This document shows positions 13,042 through 62,894 of a stretch of DNA of 64,000 nt, piece after piece. The position numbers and the translations under genes were made by a program. Every line of letters starts with the position of its first letter. The stretch's first letter is position 1. The notes below the pieces were generated by a model. It ran no database searches, was not told where the DNA came from, and saw only the letters and a list, made by a program, of their open reading frames with translations. The stretch is taken from IMG/VR virus record IMGVR_UViG_3300043436_004687, positions 1 to 64,000 of that record; one strand, 5' to 3'.

Positions 13042-14250
13042 ATGCAATTAGTTGAATCACATATAATCAAACAAAATAACCCATTTTATTCTGAATGTAA
13101 TTCACTATGTTTTAACTCTAAAAACCTATATAATAGTTGTTTATATAAAGTAAGGCAAGCATATATAAATGATAATGTAAACATATTATATGATTTACAC
13201 CATCTTATGAAAGATACTGAACAATATAAAGCATTACCAGCTAAAGTGTCTTCTACTGTTCTACTAATGGTACAGAAAAATTTTAAATCATACTTTAAAG
13301 CAAATAGTGACTATTATAAAACACCATCTAAATATAAAGGCAAACCCAAATTACCTAAATATTTAAACACAACTAATGGTAAATTTTTTGTTTCTTATAC
13401 CAATCAAGCAATATCTAAAAAAGTATTCAAGAAAACAAATAAAATTAAATTATCTGGAAATAATATAGAATTTAAAACAAAAATAACCGATTTTAATCAA
13501 ATTAATTGTATTAGAATTATACCCAAATTAGGGTATAATGTAATTGAAGTTGTTTATACAATATCAGATGTGACTAAATTAGAAAATAATGATAAGTATT
13601 GTAGTATTGATTTAGGTGTTAATAATTTAGCTACCATAGGTAGTAATACTATTACACCATTTATAATAAATGGTAAACCTTTAAAAAGTATAAATCAATA
13701 CTATAATAAAAAATATGCTTATTATAAAAGCATATTAGAAAAGAGAAATAATAAAAAAACAAGTAACTATTTACATAAATTAAATTTAAAAAGAAAAAAT
13801 AAAATAGATAATTATTTACATAAAGGAAGCAAAGAAATTGTTAATATATGTAAAATAAATAATATTAATACACTTGTAATAGGTAAAAATGATGGATGGA
13901 AACAAGATATTAATATAGGAAAACAAAATAATCAAAATTTTGTTAATATACCTCATAGTAGATTTATAGATATGTTAAACTATAAATGCGAAAGAGAAGG
14001 TATAAATGTTATACTACAAGAGGAAAGTTATACTAGTAAATGTAGTTTTTTAGATGATGAGAGTATTAAAAAACATGATGTTTATAAGGGTAGCAGAATA
14101 AAAAGAGGATTATTTAAGAGTGCCAAAGGCACACTTATAAATGCTGATTTAAATGGTAGTTATAACATACTAAAAAAAGCAATCCCGAACGCTTTCGCTA
14201 ACGGGATAGAGGGTGTAGGAGTACATCCAAAGGTAATTACTTTAAAGTAA
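13042..14250 (+). mobile_element. tnpB: Solo IS200/IS605-family TnpB RNA-guided nuclease, inserted antisense; omegaRNA-like hairpins overlap its 3' end
   Basis: RuvC motifs IDLGVNNLA, QEESYTSK, NADLNGSYNI; ATCCCG/CGGGAT hairpin ~14182-14207; no tnpA. Confidence 0.92.
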
Positions 14251-14842: not shown

Positions 14843-15601
14843 ATTATTATTCCTTTACGGATTAAAATAAATACTACAATAGAATTTTATCAACGTGTTG
14901 ATACTGTATTGTGATTCCCTTACGGATTAATATAAATACTAACTATAGTTTTTGGACAATCAGCAACTGATGCATTGTGATTCCATTTCAGATTAGGATA
15001 AATACTACAGTCAAAGTTTATTATGGGTCAAATAAAACATTGTGATTCCATTACGGATTAAGATAAATACCAATTGTATTAGCGAACGTTTCTCAAATGG
15101 AACGGTTGTGATTCCCTCACGGATTAGGATAAATACCAATTTATATGCTTCATATTGTTCCAACCTATCGGTTGTGATTCCCTCACGGATTAGGATAAAT
15201 ACCAATTCAAAAATGGTCCCAAAGAAAGATTGGTAGGTTGTGATTCCCTCACGGATTAGGATAAATACCAATAACTGAAACTGAATCAATGCTTTGTACT
15301 TAGTTGTGATTCCCTCACGGATTAGGATAAATACCAATATTAATATTTATGATATTACTTATTGGTTTGTTGTGATTCCCTCACGGATTAGGATAAATAC
15401 CAATGTATTCCCAACTATATTTAAAGAGATTAGGTTGTGATTCCCTCACGGATTAGGATAAATACCAATTATAATAATTTCAGATATGCAAGTTAATGTG
15501 TTGTGATTCCCTCACGGATTAGGATAAATACCAATTTATGAAGCTTTATAACAAGCTGTATGATAGTTGTGATTCCCTCACGGATTAGGATAAATACCAA
15601 T
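14843..15601. CRISPR. CRISPR array: 12 repeats of 36 nt (GTTGTGATTCCCTCACGGATTAGGATAAATACCAAT), 11 spacers of 29-30 nt
   Basis: Identical repeats start at 15105, 15171, 15237, 15303, 15369, 15434, 15500, 15566; degenerate copies at 14843, 14908, 14974, 15039, so the likely active/leader end faces cas6. Confidence 0.98.
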
Positions 15602-15714
15602 TGCTCTTTGTAAACTCCAATAATCATTGGAGAAAATTACCAATTTTACTAATGGGAAATGAGTATTTTTAAATCTATTTAATATAATTAGCCTCATTTT
15701 TTTAATCCTAGTGT

Positions 15715-16429: not shown

Positions 16430-17302
16430 TTAATATTTTTCTTCGGAAATTTCTGACATGAGAACAAAATTTTCAGTGTCATTTAATTCGTCTTCATAAA
16501 AGATGCCTTCAATTTTAACATAACCACCATCTAAAATATTGGTTGAGTTTTTCGATAATTTATCGACAAACCATTGTTCATAAGGTACTAAAATTTCACC
16601 ATTAAAAATATTGATGTAATCAACACCAGAAATAATTGTTTCACCTAGTAAACCATTTTTTGTTATTTCTGACCTATCTGGAGCTTCTTTGGTTAGAAAA
16701 TTAACTATTGGTGTTTTATTTTTTTCTAATAAATATTTAACAACACCATCTAACTTTGTACCTTCAATTCTATAAATATTTAACAATAATTCAAAAGGTT
16801 TTTCGGTTACATCATAACCTAATGATCCATTAATGATTTGAATAAATTCATCGTAATATTCACCCATGTATCTTTTAATCTTAAACCATTGAATGCTTGG
16901 AGCTTTGGTCCATGAATCCGATGCTGATTTATTTACCTTTGTAAATTCATCAATATACGATTCAAAAATCTCATTTTTTCTAGTTTTATTAACTTTAGGT
17001 GAATTAATTTTTAAATATGATTTATTTGCTAAATTAAAAATTAACTCATTTTTATCATAAAAAGTTTTTCTAAAGCTTGGGGCTGGTCTTTCACCAATAA
17101 GTGTATGTAACATATTGGATATTTGATGTACTGTGATTGGTTCTTTAAATGAGGTTATTTCATTTAAAGATCTACTAGACCTATTGAAATATAAATTACC
17201 TTTAGAATTAACACCAATGACAGTAACAAAATCCTTAGTTTTAACATTTTTGGGGAAAAGCTTAGCATTTTTAAAACTAAGCTTTATATATTTATTACTC
17301 AT
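16430..17302 (-). CDS. cas5: Cas5-family subunit, Cas5fv (type I-F2)-like with a helical insertion
   Basis: PITVHQISNMLHTLIG resembles the Cas5/Cas5fv N-terminal helix (recalled, not searched); C-terminal NILDGG; lies between cas7 and cas6. Confidence 0.7.
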   Translation of the reverse strand: MSNKYIKLSFKNAKLFPKNVKTKDFVTVIGVNSKGNLYFNRSSRSLNEITSFKEPITVHQISNMLHTLIGERPAPSFRKTFYDKNELIFNLANKSYLKINSPKVNKTRKNEIFESYIDEFTKVNKSASDSWTKAPSIQWFKIKRYMGEYYDEFIQIINGSLGYDVTEKPFELLLNIYRIEGTKLDGVVKYLLEKNKTPIVNFLTKEAPDRSEITKNGLLGETIISGVDYINIFNGEILVPYEQWFVDKLSKNSTNILDGGYVKIEGIFYEDELNDTENFVLMSEISEEKY

Positions 17303-17349: not shown

Positions 17350-18390
17350 TTAGCTGGTTTTTTTTAGTTTTTTTGCATCAGCAGTTTTTTTTGTTTCTTC
17401 TTTAAGAGCTTTTTCGATAATCGCTCTTTGTTCTTTAGCATTAGATTCATCAGCCAAAACATAACTTTCTTCAACATCAAAATTTAAATTATCGATATCT
17501 TCATTAGAATTAATATCAACCCAAATATTCTTTTTTGAATCCAATGGGTCCATAACTAATTCAACTGTTAACGACTTAATTTTAGCATATGCTGTTGCTC
17601 TATCAATACGAATTTGTAACATTCGTTTAAGTGTTTCTTTAATAAGAAATACAATTTGTTCATTGGTAAGTTTTAACCCATATTCAGCAACATCAATCAC
17701 TGAAGTTTTTAATGTATAATAACCCAACTCACCATCAAAATTTGGTAGGGTATGTATCAAAAACGTTTTTAATATTTCATAATCATCGGAATTAAATGAA
17801 TATCTATCAAAAATTGGATCACCACTTAAAAATTCTAATGATTGGAGATTAATAAAACCTTCAGCGATGTATGTAATATCACCAATAGTTTCCTTATTGA
17901 ATATGGTGGTATCTGATTTATCAGAATCATCACCAACTTTTTTCCCACCACTTCTAGAATAAAATTCCATATATGATTCACTATTATTTGTTTGAATAGC
18001 TGATGTAATTGTCAATGGACTTTTTCGTTTAAGTGTTTCTTTTTTTCCAGCAAACATGTATCCTCTAACAAGACCCATTGTACTTCCAATAAATGAATTT
18101 AAAAGAGATTTGTGGTGAGTTATTGATGGATTAGTAGCAATCGCATCTCCTTTAAAAATAGCATTTCTAAGAGCATCAGATGATATTTTAATTTTATAAC
18201 CCAAAACCCCATCTTCTCTTCTAAAATAATACTTCTTAGCATACATATTATTGTTATCACCAGAAGTAAATTTATTTTTATTCCCTTCTTTACTTTCTCT
18301 ATTCCAAAGATATTTTTGATCACCTGAATCATAATTTACAATTCCATTACCTTCTAATTCAATTTTAAAATTTACATGTTTTACTTTCAT
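17350..18390 (-). CDS. cas7: Cas7 backbone subunit, Cas7fv (type I-F2)-like
   Basis: VNFKIELEGNGIVNY, GLVRGY..KRKSPL, FNKETIGDITYIAEG, LEFLSGDPIFDR match my recollection of Cas7fv motifs. Confidence 0.82.
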   Translation of the reverse strand: MKVKHVNFKIELEGNGIVNYDSGDQKYLWNRESKEGNKNKFTSGDNNNMYAKKYYFRREDGVLGYKIKISSDALRNAIFKGDAIATNPSITHHKSLLNSFIGSTMGLVRGYMFAGKKETLKRKSPLTITSAIQTNNSESYMEFYSRSGGKKVGDDSDKSDTTIFNKETIGDITYIAEGFINLQSLEFLSGDPIFDRYSFNSDDYEILKTFLIHTLPNFDGELGYYTLKTSVIDVAEYGLKLTNEQIVFLIKETLKRMLQIRIDRATAYAKIKSLTVELVMDPLDSKKNIWVDINSNEDIDNLNFDVEESYVLADESNAKEQRAIIEKALKEETKKTADAKKLKKTS

Positions 18391-20905: not shown

Positions 20906-21325
20906 TTATAAATTAATTAATAAATAATAAGTTAAAAATAACTGAGCATAATGAAGTACTTGATCAAATCCAACCATACTGAAAAAACCAAAAACTGGTA
21001 TTCTACTTCCAAAATTACCATTTTCATACATTTTACTAGTAATCTTAGATGTATAATAATCCGTTATAGTATGAAAAATAAAAGTAATCGGTGGAAATAA
21101 AAATATTAAATTAATACATTGTGTATTAGTAAAATATGCCGTATCAACATCGGAAGATGTAATTCTACAAATTAAACCTATTGAGACAAACCAAACAAAA
21201 GTATACATTGTTGTATGTGCTAATAATGGTTTCACACTTTTACTCTTATTTACGGCCCAATCACCATCTTGAAAGATAAAATCTGCAATATAGTGAATAA
21301 CAATAATAATAAATGCTTCTAACAT
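20906..21325 (-). CDS. DUF3307-like membrane protein
   Basis: HYIADFIFQ and GFDQVLHYAQL motifs. Confidence 0.75.
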   Translation of the reverse strand: MLEAFIIIVIHYIADFIFQDGDWAVNKSKSVKPLLAHTTMYTFVWFVSIGLICRITSSDVDTAYFTNTQCINLIFLFPPITFIFHTITDYYTSKITSKMYENGNFGSRIPVFGFFSMVGFDQVLHYAQLFLTYYLLINL

Positions 21326-21380
21326 ATTTTTATTTTTTTAAATTTATATTGCAAATGTACAAAACTTATTTTAATAAAAC

Positions 21381-21412
21381 AAAAAAAACTTAAATATTTC
21401 TATTTAAGTTTT
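21381..21412 (-). terminator. Intrinsic terminator
   Basis: AAAACTTAAATA/TATTTAAGTTTT stem followed by a U-run on -. Confidence 0.6.
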
Positions 21413-22121
21413 AAAATTTTTTATAATCTTTTATTAAATTAGGTGGGATGTTGTTTAAAACATATATCCCATTAATTGGTAGGTTAGGATCAACATAGAA
21501 TTTAAACTTATCTTTTATTTGAGAAATATCAATTGATAATAATATTGGATTTTCTATATCGAAATTAATATTATCTACTAAACCATTAGCATCATCAGTA
21601 TTTTTTAAAAGATATATTCTTTCTGGATGGTAACTAATTTTATTTTTATGTGTTGGTTTTAACCCTATTGATTTTATACCATTTAAATATTTCTCGTCAG
21701 TTACATGATAAAGTATATCAGGTAAATTTTCTGAACTTATTTCCTCACCAAATTTAGGTTCAAATATCAATTTACTTATCATATCATCTTCATCCCACCC
21801 ATTAGATTCAATAGTTTCTAAGTTAAAGGATAAATCATTTTTAAATTCATCCACATTACTATTGATTGGCTCATGAAAATCTTCTTGATAACCAGCTAAA
21901 TACCAACCAAATATAGTCTCCATTTTCTTTATCATTGGAATTACTATATCTTTATATTTAAGTTTTAACTCGAAATTTATTTTACCATCATTATAATAAA
22001 TATCATCTGGGGAAATATTCAAACTTTCCAATTTTTGAATTAATTTTTCACCATTAATACTTTGGGTTAAACCCTCTAAAATTATATTTAATTCTTCTCT
22101 GAGTTTATATTTGATGTTCAT
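21411..22121 (-). CDS. Hypothetical protein with C-terminal ART-fold/Tpt1-like domain
   Basis: LYHVTD..IKSIGLKP..RIYLL pattern. Confidence 0.5.
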   Translation of the reverse strand: MNIKYKLREELNIILEGLTQSINGEKLIQKLESLNISPDDIYYNDGKINFELKLKYKDIVIPMIKKMETIFGWYLAGYQEDFHEPINSNVDEFKNDLSFNLETIESNGWDEDDMISKLIFEPKFGEEISSENLPDILYHVTDEKYLNGIKSIGLKPTHKNKISYHPERIYLLKNTDDANGLVDNINFDIENPILLSIDISQIKDKFKFYVDPNLPINGIYVLNNIPPNLIKDYKKF

Positions 22122-22463
22122 AGTTTATTTTTTCTTACCAATAGATTTTCTAATTTGACTTGAAAAATTCATCAAAGCATTGCTGATTTTAGTTAATTCT
22201 TCATCACTAAAACTATAAACACTACCACTATCGTTAGGTTCTCTTTCTAATTTTTTTCTAAATAAACTTCTATTTGAAGCTTCTTTATCACCTAAAACTA
22301 TTTCACAAATAGCTGCGGTGTTAATAATATCATTTTTTAAGATAGCAGCTATTTTATCATAATTAGAACCACCTACTTCATTATTTGGTTTATCCGTTTC
22401 TAGCTCATTTAAACTCTTGTTTAACAATTCACTAATTAACAATTTATTCATAGAATTTGTTTA

Positions 22464-23348
22464 CTAATAAATAGTCATTATTTTTTTTAATTTGATTAAA
22501 TTTTTTTGCTTTATCTGTCTAACACCCTCCTTGGATAAATTCATTTTTTCAGCAACTTCTCTTATGGAATGAACTTTATTACCATTCAATCCAAACAAAT
22601 AAATGAAAACTTCTTTATTTCTATCATCTTTAATATTAGATAATAGTTTATCAACCAAAGCAATGGTATCTTCATTATTTATATTATCATCAGCCCTACC
22701 ATAAACATTATCTTCTAATAATTCAATTCTAGAATATGAATTATTTTCATTATCACTTATTTGTTTATCTAAAGAATATGAATTTTCAGTTTCGTGTTCA
22801 AAATAAAATTCAATTTGTTCTTTGGTATATTCACCCCCACAATATTCCATTAGCTCATTTATGTTTGGTTGTCTCTCCAAAATTTGTTCCATTAGACAAG
22901 CCTTTTGCCTAATTTTACTAATCATAGATAACTTATTAATTGGTAATTTTACAGACCTAGCATTTTTAGCTATAAAAGATAACATATCCGCCCTAATCCA
23001 CCAAACAGCAAAAGTAATGAATCTGAAACCCTTTGTGGGATCAAATTTTCTGGCAGCTCTTATTAAACCGTGATTACCCTCGTTAATCAAATCTTCCAAT
23101 GAATTTTCAACAGAAACATATTGCTTAGCTACACTAATAACAAATCTTAGATTTTTATTAACTAAAATCATCAACGCTTCTTCACGCTCTAATTCTGATA
23201 AATTAGGGTTGGTAGCCTTTAAAGCAATTTCAAATTCCTCATCTGGACTTAAGACTTCGGTGCTTCTAACCTCATCTAAATATCTATTAAAAGAATTAGA
23301 AACTAAAAGCCGATTATTCATTTTTTGGTGAAGCCTAAAATTTTTCAT
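22464..23348 (-). CDS. RNA polymerase sigma-70 factor (short RpoD/RpoS-like)
   Basis: YLDEV..LSPDEE, NLRFVISVAKQY, DLINEGNHGLIRAARKFDP, FITFAVWWIR, region 4 HTH. Confidence 0.93.
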   Translation of the reverse strand: MKNFRLHQKMNNRLLVSNSFNRYLDEVRSTEVLSPDEEFEIALKATNPNLSELEREEALMILVNKNLRFVISVAKQYVSVENSLEDLINEGNHGLIRAARKFDPTKGFRFITFAVWWIRADMLSFIAKNARSVKLPINKLSMISKIRQKACLMEQILERQPNINELMEYCGGEYTKEQIEFYFEHETENSYSLDKQISDNENNSYSRIELLEDNVYGRADDNINNEDTIALVDKLLSNIKDDRNKEVFIYLFGLNGNKVHSIREVAEKMNLSKEGVRQIKQKNLIKLKKIMTIY

Positions 23349-39030: not shown

Positions 39031-39932
39031 TGGATAATTTTACAATTTATAGTATTAGTAGTGAGGGTGAAATTTTTTATATTGGTAGGACTTGTGATTT
39101 AAAACGTAGAAAAAACGAACACATGTCTGAAAATAAAGGAAACACTTATAAGTCAAATAAAATAAAAAAGTTAAGAAGAGAAAATAAAGAAATTAATTTT
39201 AATATTTTACATGAAAATCTTACATATGAACAATCAATTGAATTAGAAATAAAGGAAATTAAAGAACATAAAGAAAAAGGTTATATACTAGCTAATTTAA
39301 CTGATGGTGGAGAAGGAACTTTTGGTCATAAACCTATATTTACTGATGAATGGAAAAATAATCTTAAAATGGCTAGAAAACTCTTATTTAATGATGGTTA
39401 TGAAGTTGCCAATAAAGGTAAAACATTAGAGGAATTAATTGGAAAAGAAAAAGCTAAAGAACAGAAAGAACGTATTGGTAAAAAGATTAGTGATGGAATA
39501 AAATCTGGATTAATAAAACATAATAAAGGAAAAAAGTTAGAAGAATTAGTAGGTATTGATAGAGCAACTGAACTAAAAGAAGAAATTAGGGTTAGAGCTA
39601 AAAATACCTTTACTGGGATAAAACAAAATAATAGCCACATTAATAAACGTATTAGTAAACAAATTGAAACTAAATCTAATTGGTCAATTGAAAAACGTGA
39701 AGAAATTAGACAGGCTAATAAATTAAATGGTGCTAAAGCACATAAAAATTATAACTTTATTGTTGATGGGTTTAATCATTATGGTACTTGGAAAAGTTTA
39801 TCTCCAGCACTAAGAGAAGAACAAGGAATAATAGTTAGTCCCGATTCATTAAGTCAATTTTATAGAGGAAAAATTAAAACCTTAAAATGTGGAATTAAAA
39901 CAATTAAAATTCAACCTCTATTAAATGACTAA
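39030..39932 (+). CDS. GIY-YIG endonuclease, antisense insertion overlapping the PARP 3' end
   Basis: IYSISSEGEIFYIGRT..RRKNEH; LANLTDGGEG; repeated NKGK.LEEL.G. Confidence 0.85.
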   Translation: MDNFTIYSISSEGEIFYIGRTCDLKRRKNEHMSENKGNTYKSNKIKKLRRENKEINFNILHENLTYEQSIELEIKEIKEHKEKGYILANLTDGGEGTFGHKPIFTDEWKNNLKMARKLLFNDGYEVANKGKTLEELIGKEKAKEQKERIGKKISDGIKSGLIKHNKGKKLEELVGIDRATELKEEIRVRAKNTFTGIKQNNSHINKRISKQIETKSNWSIEKREEIRQANKLNGAKAHKNYNFIVDGFNHYGTWKSLSPALREEQGIIVSPDSLSQFYRGKIKTLKCGIKTIKIQPLLND

Positions 39933-41175
39933 TAGTCGTTTGTTGTGATTTATATATAATATACTCATCTTTTCGTAAATCAATACCTTTATGAGCATGA
40001 ACACTATCATAACCACCAGCTTCAACTTCTTTACTAATTTTATAACATGACGAATCATGTTTATATTTATTTAATTGTTTACCAACATGAACATCAAATA
40101 ATCCCAAAAATACTTTATTATTTCTAGAACCACCTGCCCACCTACCACCATCAGTATAACCTAACGATTTATCTGAATCTGATGCAAAATAAATCCCATC
40201 ATCCCACATACTACCAGTATGAATTGCCCCAGAAGGTCTGATTAATAACCCAGTTTGTAAGATATTGAACCAATTTTGGTTTCTAGAACCATGCCAATAA
40301 AGTCTTCTTTTCTTAACTTTAGCTAATTCAAAATTATTATCAAATATTCTTTGTGTTTTCTTATTAATCACTTTGAATACTTTTCTAATTTGATGAGCAT
40401 TATGACCCATAAGTTTTTTAATTAAATCCAATTTTTCATTGTCAGTTTCAATCTCAACTTTTAAACCTAATTGATCTAATATGGTTAAATCTTGTTTTAT
40501 ATCTTCACTATTATTTGAATCTTCTTTTTGTTTTTTCAATAATTGAACTTGACCCGCCATTACATCTAGGGTTTCTTGCTCGCTATTAATAAATTCTTTA
40601 GCTTTTTCTAAATCTTGTTTATTATTAATAGGTTTTAATAAATAATCCTTTACATCTTTCATGTTTCTAGGGATTATTGTATATAATTTCAATAACAATT
40701 CATTTAAAACTTTAACATCTGATTTTAAATTTAAAGTACTAGAAATTTGATTTAATATTTCTTGAGCAGAATTAATTTGTAATTCAGTTACCGAACTTTG
40801 AGTTACCTTATAATTCTTTTGGATAGATTTATTAGCATAGGCCATTAAATCATCAATAAGTTGTTTAACTACTTTATCTTCAATTTCTTTTATGGTTGAA
40901 CTAGAAGCGTTGTCTATTTCAGTTTCAATGAACATTTCGGTAACATCGGTATAACCCTTAGTTTTAGAAATTTTTTGTTTATAAACAGAATTCCATTTTG
41001 AAATATCTTTATATTCTGTTGCTAAATTATTACCAACTCTACCATATTGACACTTAATTTTACCATCACTTTGTTCCTCCATAATGTAAACCTTATTGGA
41101 ATTTGACGTTAAACCATTGTCGATTGATACATGAATTAATTTAGCATAACGTAAACCATTCTCCTTTATAATCAT
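39904..41175 (-). CDS. PARP-like ADP-ribosyltransferase (WGR, regulatory, catalytic domains)
   Basis: WGR-like NKVYIM..QYGRVG; LYTIIP; WHGSR..ILQTGL; GIYFA; DEYIIY (H-Y-E triad). Confidence 0.88.
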   Translation of the reverse strand: MIIKENGLRYAKLIHVSIDNGLTSNSNKVYIMEEQSDGKIKCQYGRVGNNLATEYKDISKWNSVYKQKISKTKGYTDVTEMFIETEIDNASSSTIKEIEDKVVKQLIDDLMAYANKSIQKNYKVTQSSVTELQINSAQEILNQISSTLNLKSDVKVLNELLLKLYTIIPRNMKDVKDYLLKPINNKQDLEKAKEFINSEQETLDVMAGQVQLLKKQKEDSNNSEDIKQDLTILDQLGLKVEIETDNEKLDLIKKLMGHNAHQIRKVFKVINKKTQRIFDNNFELAKVKKRRLYWHGSRNQNWFNILQTGLLIRPSGAIHTGSMWDDGIYFASDSDKSLGYTDGGRWAGGSRNNKVFLGLFDVHVGKQLNKYKHDSSCYKISKEVEAGGYDSVHAHKGIDLRKDEYIIYKSQQTTISHLIEVEF

Positions 41176-61751: not shown

Positions 61752-62894
61752 TTATTTTAATCCTAATAACCTAATTCCTTCATTCTTTATATTGATAGCT
61801 GCATTCAAATCCCTATTAATACTCAAATTACATTCACTACAATTATATAACCTATGTTTCAATTCTAAATCTATTTTTTTATTCCCACAACAACTACATA
61901 ATTTACTACTAGCAAACCATCTATCAATATCAACTAAATCCCTACCATACCATTCAGATTTATATTTAAGTATATTCTTAAATCTATTTAAACTCAATTC
62001 TTGTATAGATTTAGCTAATTTATGATTCTTCATCATACCACTTACATTTAAATTTTCAATTACTATAACTTGGTTATCATTTAGTAATTTATTTGCTACT
62101 TCATGTAAATAATTTTCTTTTTTATTAGTTAATTTTTCATTAAATTTAGCTAATTTTATTCTAGCTTTTTCTTTATTTTTACTACCATTTTCTTTTTTAC
62201 TTAAATTCTTATGTAATTTAGCTAACTTGTTTTTGTTATTTCTAATTATTTTTAAGTTATCATATTCTACACCATTTGAATCAACTATAAATGTTTTTAT
62301 TCCTAAATCAATTCCTACTATATTATTTTTAGGCGTATCTAATTCTAATAATTCATTTGAATCAACTAATATACTTAAAAAATATTTGTTTGATTTAGTT
62401 TTAGATAGTGTAGCTGATTTAATTCCTTCTTTATATTTGTTAAGATAATTAACATACTTATCTGACGTTCTAAATTTAATATCTTTTAATTGACTTGTAA
62501 GTGTTAACTTATTTGATAAATAATTATTTTTCTTAGATATTGCTTCTAATGGAAATCTACAACTTTGTATATTATCATGTTTTGATTTAAAATTAGGAAA
62601 CCCACTTCCATTTATAAAAAATCGTTTATAGCTATCTAACAAATTAATTACAGATTGTTTCAATACTTTGGTATTATGATTAGTTAACCAAATATAATCT
62701 GAATTTTTAGTTAGAGTTTGATGAAAATAGTTACCCAATTCTTTCAACCCCAAATTGCTTTTATCTTTTAAATAAGATTCTTTTTTAAGGGATAAGCAAT
62801 TATTAAATACGAATCGATAGCTACCAAACAAATCATTTAAATATGATTGTTGTGTAGTATTAGGGTATATACGTATTTTAATTGATTTTAACAT
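61752..62894 (-). mobile_element. tnpB: Solo IS200/IS605-family TnpB (HTH, RuvC, Zn finger) with downstream omegaRNA-like region
   Basis: KIRIYPN, GIDLGIK, VIENLNV, CSCCG..CSEC, RDLNAAINI. Confidence 0.95.

Follow-up and report, generated by a model that had tools for sequence, protein, structure and literature searches.

Among described CRISPR-Cas systems, type I-F2 (I-Fv) of Shewanella putrefaciens (PDB 5O6U, 9G44; PMC12956352) comes closest to the effector considered here. The Cas7 proteins are related, neither system has Cas8 or Cas11, there is a weak structural match for Cas5, and the gene order cas3-cas7-cas5-cas6-array is common to both. Canonical I-F2 loci contain 27-bp repeats (27-28), 32-bp spacers, Cas6f, a Cas2-Cas3 fusion, Cas1 and a GG PAM (PMC12956352). 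The phage locus, by comparison, has 36-nt repeats, 29-30-nt spacers, a classical Cas6, an unfused Cas3 and no Cas1.

CRISPR-Cas systems without adaptation genes are known from huge phages, and use of the host's Cas proteins has been proposed where the phage repeats resemble those of the host (Al-Shayeb et al., 2020, PMC7162821). The present phage shares with these phages a genome of more than 200 kb, an interference module, a compact array and the absence of Cas1, Cas2 and Cas4, but the type I example given there is an I-C variant that lacks Cas6 and has another helicase (PMC7162821). The type I-F system of Vibrio phage ICP1 is also a compact, phage-encoded type I system, which is used against a competing element (PMC10161043). 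ICP1, however, has Cas1 and Cas2/3 and acquires spacers itself, and its small Cas8f and 28-nt I-F repeats are unlike those of the phage here (PMC10161043).

Loading of an array by a Cas1 encoded elsewhere has precedents. In F. columnare the type II-C Cas1 loads a type VI-B array in trans (Hoikkala et al., 2021, PMC8092290). The II-C and VI-B arrays of this bacterium both have 36-bp repeats and a leader-distal GTTGT, and in both of them new spacers face the leader with their PAM end; the II-C PAM is N5-TAAA, and similarly placed poly-T/poly-A tracts occur in the two leaders, for which a role in integration has been suggested (PMC8092290). The VI-B array is like the phage array in having no Cas1-Cas2 of its own, in its 36-bp/30-nt geometry, in its GTTGT end and in transcription from the leader, which is predicted for the phage. 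There, however, both arrays lie on one chromosome and the reader is Cas13b, whereas in the present case a phage carries the array, a class 1 Cascade with Cas3 would read it and the loading is proposed from sequence. Experiments have also shown that the arrays of IV-A3 plasmids are loaded by the Cas1/2 of a host I-E system (Benz et al., 10.1101/2023.06.23.546257). These plasmids, too, are mobile elements with an effector and an array, and the host integrase there acts on matching repeats and leaders; donor and recipient are both class 1, whereas the donor proposed here is class 2 and the carrier a lytic-type jumbo phage. No description of an I-F2-like family with II-C-style arrays was found in the literature searched, and what appears to be new is a specific, family-wide match of a phage class 1 array and leader to host-type class 2 arrays.

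The record analysed is a complete virus genome of 339,635 bp with direct terminal repeats, from a lake phage; the window, that is, the whole stretch of DNA presented, is its first 64 kb (64,000 nucleotides), with about 25% G+C and nearly all genes on the minus strand. Nine tRNA genes, a thymidylate synthase, a glutathionylspermidine synthase and a PRPP synthetase are encoded in it. Upstream of cas3 (window 20906-23348) lie a DUF3307-like gene, a Tpt1/KptA-like RNA 2'-phosphotransferase and a sigma-70 family factor, with a PARP-domain protein further on (window 39904-41175). The phage sigma factor gave the only lead, a weak one, toward Bacteroidota as host; homologues of the TnpB and the PRPP synthetase, searched as a host clue, were nearly all metagenome proteins and indicated no host. 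Among cultured or deposited phage genomes, none gave a match to Cas7 or to the array. TnpB homologues are common on other very large metagenomic contigs. An assignment of the array to the neighbouring TnpB/Cas12f-like gene was considered and rejected, as polarity, leader and the whole family of related loci tie the array to cas6. The features are listed in Table 1.

Table 1. Features of the phage CRISPR-Cas locus and of the compared bacterial loci (window coordinates unless a locus is named).
Feature	Position	Strand	Remarks
CRISPR array	14843..15601	-	12 repeats x 36 nt and 11 spacers x 29-30 nt
Four decayed repeats, old leader-distal end	14843..15074	-	10, 6, 8 and 4 mismatches
Eight identical 36-nt repeats, young leader-proximal part	15105..15601	-	0 mismatches; 0 expected in shuffles
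Spacer 7	15141..15170	-	perfect 30/30 to the phage's own RNA ligase gene, genome 275118-275147
Spacer 5	15273..15302	-	perfect 30/30 protospacer in a 445-nt non-array contig, lake-water metagenome
Spacer 2	15470..15499	-	last 24 nt match in a 16.6-kb contig, another lake-water run
Leader, between cas6 stop codon and first repeat	15602..15714	-	
cas6, 231 aa	15715..16410	-	TIGR01877 4.5e-19, above cut-off; PADLOC Cas6b 8.6e-35; P. furiosus Cas6 structures 3e-4
cas5fv-like gene, 290 aa, Cas5 position	16430..17302	-	weak structural match
cas7fv-like gene, 346 aa, backbone subunit	17350..18390	-	NF040577, 5o6u_C, PF28157
cas3, 746 aa	18458..20698	-	HD nuclease from residue 12, DEAD helicase, Cas3 C-terminal domain
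TnpB (IS605 OrfB / Cas12f-like) gene 1	13042-14250	+	adjoins decayed array end
TnpB (IS605 OrfB / Cas12f-like) gene 2	61752-62894	-	
REP-associated tyrosine-transposase-like gene	L041:13739-14374, L042:12277-12909, L043:12390-13001		

The array and leader under study belong to a minimal type I CRISPR-Cas system that is carried by a phage and lacks adaptation genes. The type I locus claimed in the preliminary description was confirmed by a minus-strand operon of four genes beside the array, cas3, cas7fv-like, cas5fv-like and cas6, with no gene for a Cas8 (large) or Cas11 (small) subunit; the same holds in its relatives. Cas7 is a relative of Cas7fv and not an equivalog, judging from its sequence matches: NF040577 (Cas7fv) was found at 1.2e-26 with 93.8 bits against a cut-off of 200, the PDB Cas7fv chain 5o6u_C matched at 2e-16 over residues 3-278, and the precomputed Pfam family is PF28157, 'Cas7fv-like'. 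The 290-aa protein in the Cas5 position, conserved across the family, matched no known family and no PDB sequence. Its AF2 model has a pLDDT of 70.6, and the top two Foldseek matches in the PDB, 9g44_B and 5o6u_F, both weak (E ~0.01, TM 0.25-0.27), come from the I-F2 and I-Fv Cascade entries; a protein like Cas5fv, which in I-F2 reads the PAM with an alpha-helical domain, is weakly suggested by this structural evidence. Cas6 is of the classical Cas6/Cas6b type rather than the Cas6f of I-F2, and Cas3, in which the HD domain starts at residue 12, carries no Cas2 fusion.

Type I-B systems combine Cas8b with Cas7b and Cas5b and have repeats of about 30 nt that end in ATTGAAAx. The preliminary description had held that I-B-type repeats would speak against a borrowed adaptation module. 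A type I-B assignment was rejected, given that Cas8b is missing, Cas7 best matches Cas7fv models, only Cas6 is Cas6b-like, and the 36-nt repeat, which is not I-B-like, ends on the minus strand in ATCACAAC. Type VI-B was also considered, and the window holds no ORF of more than 746 aa that could be a Cas13b. Overall, the effector resembles type I-F2 in its Cas7fv-like and Cas5fv-like proteins, its Cas3 and the absence of Cas8 and Cas11, but it has a classical Cas6; since several defining features of I-F2 are missing, the system is better regarded as a new variant carried by phages.

The phage genome as a whole contains no other array, and the predicted reading of this one on the minus strand follows from the position of the leader and the direction of the cas genes. 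Its coordinates in the preliminary description proved exact, as did the account of a weakly structured repeat: on either strand, folding was no better than that of shuffles (z = 0.17 and -0.45). The conserved copies do lie, as had been noted, at the 3' end of the GTTG strand, where the eight identical repeats occupy the high-coordinate end. The decayed copies had been said to end in TACTACA, which holds for two of the four and fails for the other two. Searches for the repeat among the Rfam CRISPR-DR families, and for its exact sequence in IMG/VR, gave no match. A tracrRNA anti-repeat was sought across the whole phage genome, where no 13-mer of the repeat occurs on either strand outside the array and no near copy of its last 20 nt was found, a search that a short imperfect anti-repeat could escape. 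Promoters inside the repeats, firing towards the leader, are known from type II-C arrays. TAAAT is present in each repeat on the plus strand, and consensus scans for promoter-like sites in the leader and repeat region were at chance level. A 108-aa ORF with a TTG start that lies wholly within the array (window 15011-15337, minus strand) is a repeat artefact and no gene.

No adaptation gene was found in the phage. Profile searches of the complete genome for Cas1 (PF01867, TIGR00287, TIGR03639), Cas2, Cas4 and Cas9 were all negative, Cas1 and Cas2 HMMs made from the loci compared here recovered only their positive controls, and nowhere in the genome do cas9, cas1 and cas2 stand adjacent as they do in II-C loci. 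Cas1 and Cas2 were equally not found in 738 kb of loci from the related phage family. Effector genes and an array without Cas1, Cas2 or Cas4 are thus present, as in the adaptation-less CRISPR-Cas systems of huge phages.

The locus belongs to a large family. More than 200 close relatives of the phage Cas7 were found in metagenomes, the homologues forming 601 clusters at 50% identity, and all loci examined via Cas7, which represent a few of these clusters, contain the four-gene module followed by a 36/30 array; a pattern search for Cas6 in IMG/VR gave no relative. Throughout the family the polarity is the same, with conserved repeats adjoining cas6 and decayed copies farther off. On the cas-sense strand the family repeats have 36 nt, start with NYTGK and end in GGGAATCACAAC or a one-base variant of it. 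A metagenome scan for two such repeat ends one period apart returned 100 arrays, many of them on contigs of 100-450 kb; among the 80 arrays listed, a Cas6 homologue was found at 49, Cas7 at 28, Cas3 at 25, and Cas9 and Cas1 at none. The 47 distinct family repeats contain only pyrimidines at positions 18-20 and GGG at positions 25-27, with a GNRA-type loop at positions 21-24 in 40 of them, so that the layout is a small CC-GNRA-GG hairpin followed by AAUCACAAC. A hairpin followed by a handle is the usual layout of a Cas6 substrate, and the next crRNA would keep a 5' handle of 8-9 nt. The window repeat is family-specific, moving with the Cas6/Cas7fv-like module, and is not a borrowed host repeat.

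Spacer length in the family is tightly defined, 80% of the 650 unique spacers being 30 nt and 12% being 29 nt long. Two arrays, L075 and L126, have 13 trailing spacers in common and differ in the two nearest the leader, and the pairs L091/L097 and L085/L089 show a similar difference at the leader end with some internal exchange. As close relatives keep the old spacers and differ at the cas6-proximal end, spacers are still being added. In other arrays with one common repeat the order of the spacers is mosaic, so recombination also plays a part. Nine arrays (L044, L070, L075, L084, L086, L098, L101, L126 and L129) have one repeat and the same spacers in different orders, and their repeats vary by 1-3 bases from copy to copy; the reordered spacers and varying repeats suggest frequent recombination between the arrays of co-infecting relatives.

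The likeness of these arrays to bacterial ones was assessed in Bacteroidota. A search of 400 Bacteroidota genomes with the 9-nt repeat end at the right period revealed three bacterial arrays, each combining 36-nt repeats with 30-nt spacers and each adjoining cas9, cas2 and a type II cas1; the phage-type repeat itself occurred in no bacterial array of these 400 genomes and only on a phage-like contig of one MAG. When the 9-nt end used for selection is left out, 8-11 of 27 positions of the window repeat agree in register with the repeats of these three loci (p = 0.06-0.36), which is not significant. Because this search had selected by sequence, a second II-C set was drawn by Cas1 alone. Type II Cas1 was present in 67 of 401 sampled Bacteroidota genomes, and the set comprised 30 such loci, with arrays downstream of cas1-cas2.

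In the Cas1-selected loci, spacers are about 30 nt long, and repeats are 46-47 nt in most and 36-37 nt in a minority. A count of II-C spacer lengths gave 30 nt in 37/42 and 29 nt in 5/42. On the cas-sense strand the II-C repeat ends in ...TGAAAGCAAWTCACAAC (also given as ...GAAAGCAAWTCACAAC and ...AAWTCACAAC). Over its last 20 nt the window repeat agrees with the II-C consensus at 13 positions and the family consensus at 14, compared with 11-20 (mean 15.7) for II-C repeats among themselves. The differences amount to about four bases, TT to CC and CA to GG, and these are the bases that form the phage-specific CC-GNRA-GG hairpin ahead of the 8-9-nt handle. Polarity is also the same: in both groups the leader faces the cas genes and decayed repeats lie at the far end, which in a II-C array is the end distal to cas2. 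The layout published for the II-C and VI-B arrays of F. columnare is in accord with this (PMC8092290). The window array thus has the repeat length, the spacers of about 30 nt, the GTTG-type leader-distal end and the opposite leader of a II-C array.

A further likeness was observed in the leader. A run of at least five T at -60..-52 from the first repeat is present in 23 of 39 distinct phage-family leaders, such runs being almost absent elsewhere in the leader, and a T-run between -67 and -50 occurs in 21 of the 26 Cas1-selected II-C loci in which a script detected an array, one of which (L167) is not a credible array. Two of the three first-found II-C loci have it at -58..-53. A T-run preceding the first repeat by about 56 nt is common to both groups; it need not be a signal for integration and could instead belong to a promoter or terminator. 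Several observations stand against a II-C donor: most Bacteroidota II-C repeats have 46-47 nt and not 36 nt, the T-run of the window leader is itself interrupted (it reads CATTTCCC at -60..-53), and the three first-found bacteria with 36-nt II-C repeats have a GC content of 40-47%. The spacers of these three bacteria gave no match on this phage. In three Bacteroidota II-C loci with 36-nt repeats (L041, L042 and L043) a REP-associated tyrosine-transposase-like gene (~205 aa) is conserved between cas9 and cas1.

Given a phage without loading genes of its own and an array and leader of II-C type, the Cas1-Cas2 of the infected cell is the likeliest loader. We assign a probability of about 0.55 to the reading, drawn from sequence comparison, that a host II-C Cas1-Cas2 loads the array in trans and the phage Cascade reads it. 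The array would be transcribed from the leader on the minus strand, and Cas6 would cut after the CC-GNRA-GG hairpin, at a site predicted from the repeat layout, to leave an 8-9-nt 5' handle (A)AUCACAAC. The short Cascade would then take the 30-nt guide to the DNA of competing elements, which Cas3 would degrade. New spacers would be inserted in trans by the Cas1-Cas2 of the infected cell, most likely a type II-C module, whose 30-nt ruler, repeat ends and leader layout the phage array would mimic. In II-C integration the spacer is expected to be inserted with its PAM end facing the leader; as this is the end where a type I Cascade reads the PAM, spacers would arrive in a usable orientation.

The essentials of this reading, with a host class 2 module writing and the phage Cas6/Cascade reading, had been put forward in the preliminary description. 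They were borne out in part: they gained from the absence of cas1, cas2, cas4 and cas9 in the phage, including the cas1/cas2 that had been named as an argument to the contrary, from the gain of spacers at the leader end and from the II-C likeness, whereas a bacterial array with the exact repeat and a consistent PAM were not found. The point that the geometry is II-C-like rather than type I-like was itself strengthened by the Cas1-selected loci, in spacer length, polarity, repeat end and T-run. A wider picture can be offered tentatively: in a freshwater and saline jumbo phage lineage of wide distribution, a minimal class 1 effector may have been fitted to arrays that are tuned, in repeat ends, 30-nt ruler and leader, to the class 2 (II-C) Cas1-Cas2 of Bacteroidota hosts, the host writing the guides used against rivals and a self-directed spacer remaining as a footprint. 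Adaptation would in that case cross both CRISPR class and replicon.

The spacers could also come from another integrase that acts in trans and measures 30 nt, belonging to a co-infecting mobile element, to an unsampled family member with cas1-cas2 or to a non-II-C system of the host, and the II-C likeness would then reflect shared repeat ancestry and not present use. What is seen directly is the absence of adaptation genes and the turnover of spacers, whereas the donor is inferred, and the contexts available, parts of large related contigs, cover few of the 601 Cas7fv-like clusters, both of which leave room for such a source. It is nonetheless considered rather unlikely, since the 738 kb of family loci contain neither Cas1 nor Cas2 and since leader T-run and repeat tail match II-C specifically. 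A Bacteroidetes MAG with a family member (L020; G001:C107:1-6772) does have a Cas1 of its own, beside an array with 37-nt repeats, a 73-nt period and 36-nt spacers; this array belongs to another CRISPR type, has no relation to the phage repeat and cannot explain 30-nt spacers. In an alternative that needs no integrase today, the arrays would be passed on by descent, and recombination and the loss of spacers among co-infecting relatives would be their only sources of diversity. The mosaic spacer order among arrays with one repeat fits this, as do the internal blocks swapped between L091 and L097, the interrupted T-run of the window and the decay of a third of its repeats. The spacers must have entered at some time, however, and 650 unique spacers of tightly ruled length, array pairs that differ only in leader-proximal spacers and eight identical window repeats, which argue for recent duplication by integration, make an account by recombination alone improbable.

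It is also conceivable that the array was made for a class 2 effector of the host, Cas9 or Cas13b, as a decoy or a hijack, and not for the phage Cascade, its repeat ends, 36/30 geometry and polarity being of the II-C/VI-B kind. Throughout the family, however, the array is accompanied by a full type I interference module, the family-specific base changes create a hairpin and handle suited to Cas6, and neither an anti-repeat nor a solitary repeat was found in the phage genome. In its inner half the repeat is furthermore unlike that of II-C and would therefore pair poorly with a host tracrRNA, so that this explanation appears very improbable.

Spacer targets were sought as a route to a PAM, as the preliminary description had proposed, and this succeeded in part: it yielded one self match and two lake-water protospacers (Table 1), whereas spacers 2, 5, 6 and 8 gave no match in IMG/VR, deposited phage genomes contained no target, and the three protospacers have no PAM in common. 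Their type I-style flanks at the leader-facing end are AAT (self), TTA and TCA. On the GTTG strand TAAA is located at +6, +10 and +5 of the three protospacers, and only the self protospacer fits N5-TAAA, the II-C PAM of F. columnare, a single case in AT-rich DNA. The RNA ligase gene targeted by spacer 7 (genome 275027-276337; L149:3028-4338, minus strand; phrog_968 2e-60) and the array copy were each confirmed in their sequence contexts by contigs of three lake-water runs. In crRNA sense, the three bases after the self protospacer (ATT) are also the first three of the next repeat, and the identity thus spans 33 nt. This perfect self-matching spacer may have arisen incidentally, when a host integrase sampled the infecting phage. 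Two kb from the RNA ligase gene lies a homologue of the anti-Gabija protein Gad1 (PF25705, 4e-75; genome 272836-273960). A match of a related array's spacer to this phage (24/30 nt, AT-rich) was dismissed as chance.

Phage CRISPR systems that lack Cas1-Cas2 raise the question of where their spacers come from, to which this locus and its approximately 100 relatives offer a concrete and testable answer. The array appears to copy the ends, ruler and leader layout of II-C, with about four base changes making the repeat a substrate for Cas6 and Cascade. If this is correct, the integrase of one CRISPR class can feed the effector of the other, a virus can exploit the adaptation machinery of its host, and an 'integrase part' can be told apart from an 'effector part' within a repeat. 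For tool builders the four-gene effector may be of interest too, being compact and using a 30-nt guide.

Two further kinds of array were observed in the course of the survey. Mini-arrays at L048, L052, L103 and L113 contain 2-4 copies of a 36-nt repeat that starts with GTTGG and ends in GGGGAATCACAAC. The contigs around them are AT-rich and show no recognisable cas or defence genes in the vicinity, so these may be orphan virus-borne arrays that depend on a system located elsewhere. At L148:6380-8310 (also in L147) a divergent Cas7fv-like operon includes a gene for a Cas6e-family protein (PF08798). In L148, more than 30 units of about 21 nt come after this operon at intervals of about 50 nt, each consisting of a CCCT-loop-AGGG hairpin with a variable loop and ATTGAAAG; the repeats there appear to be reduced to hairpin and handle.
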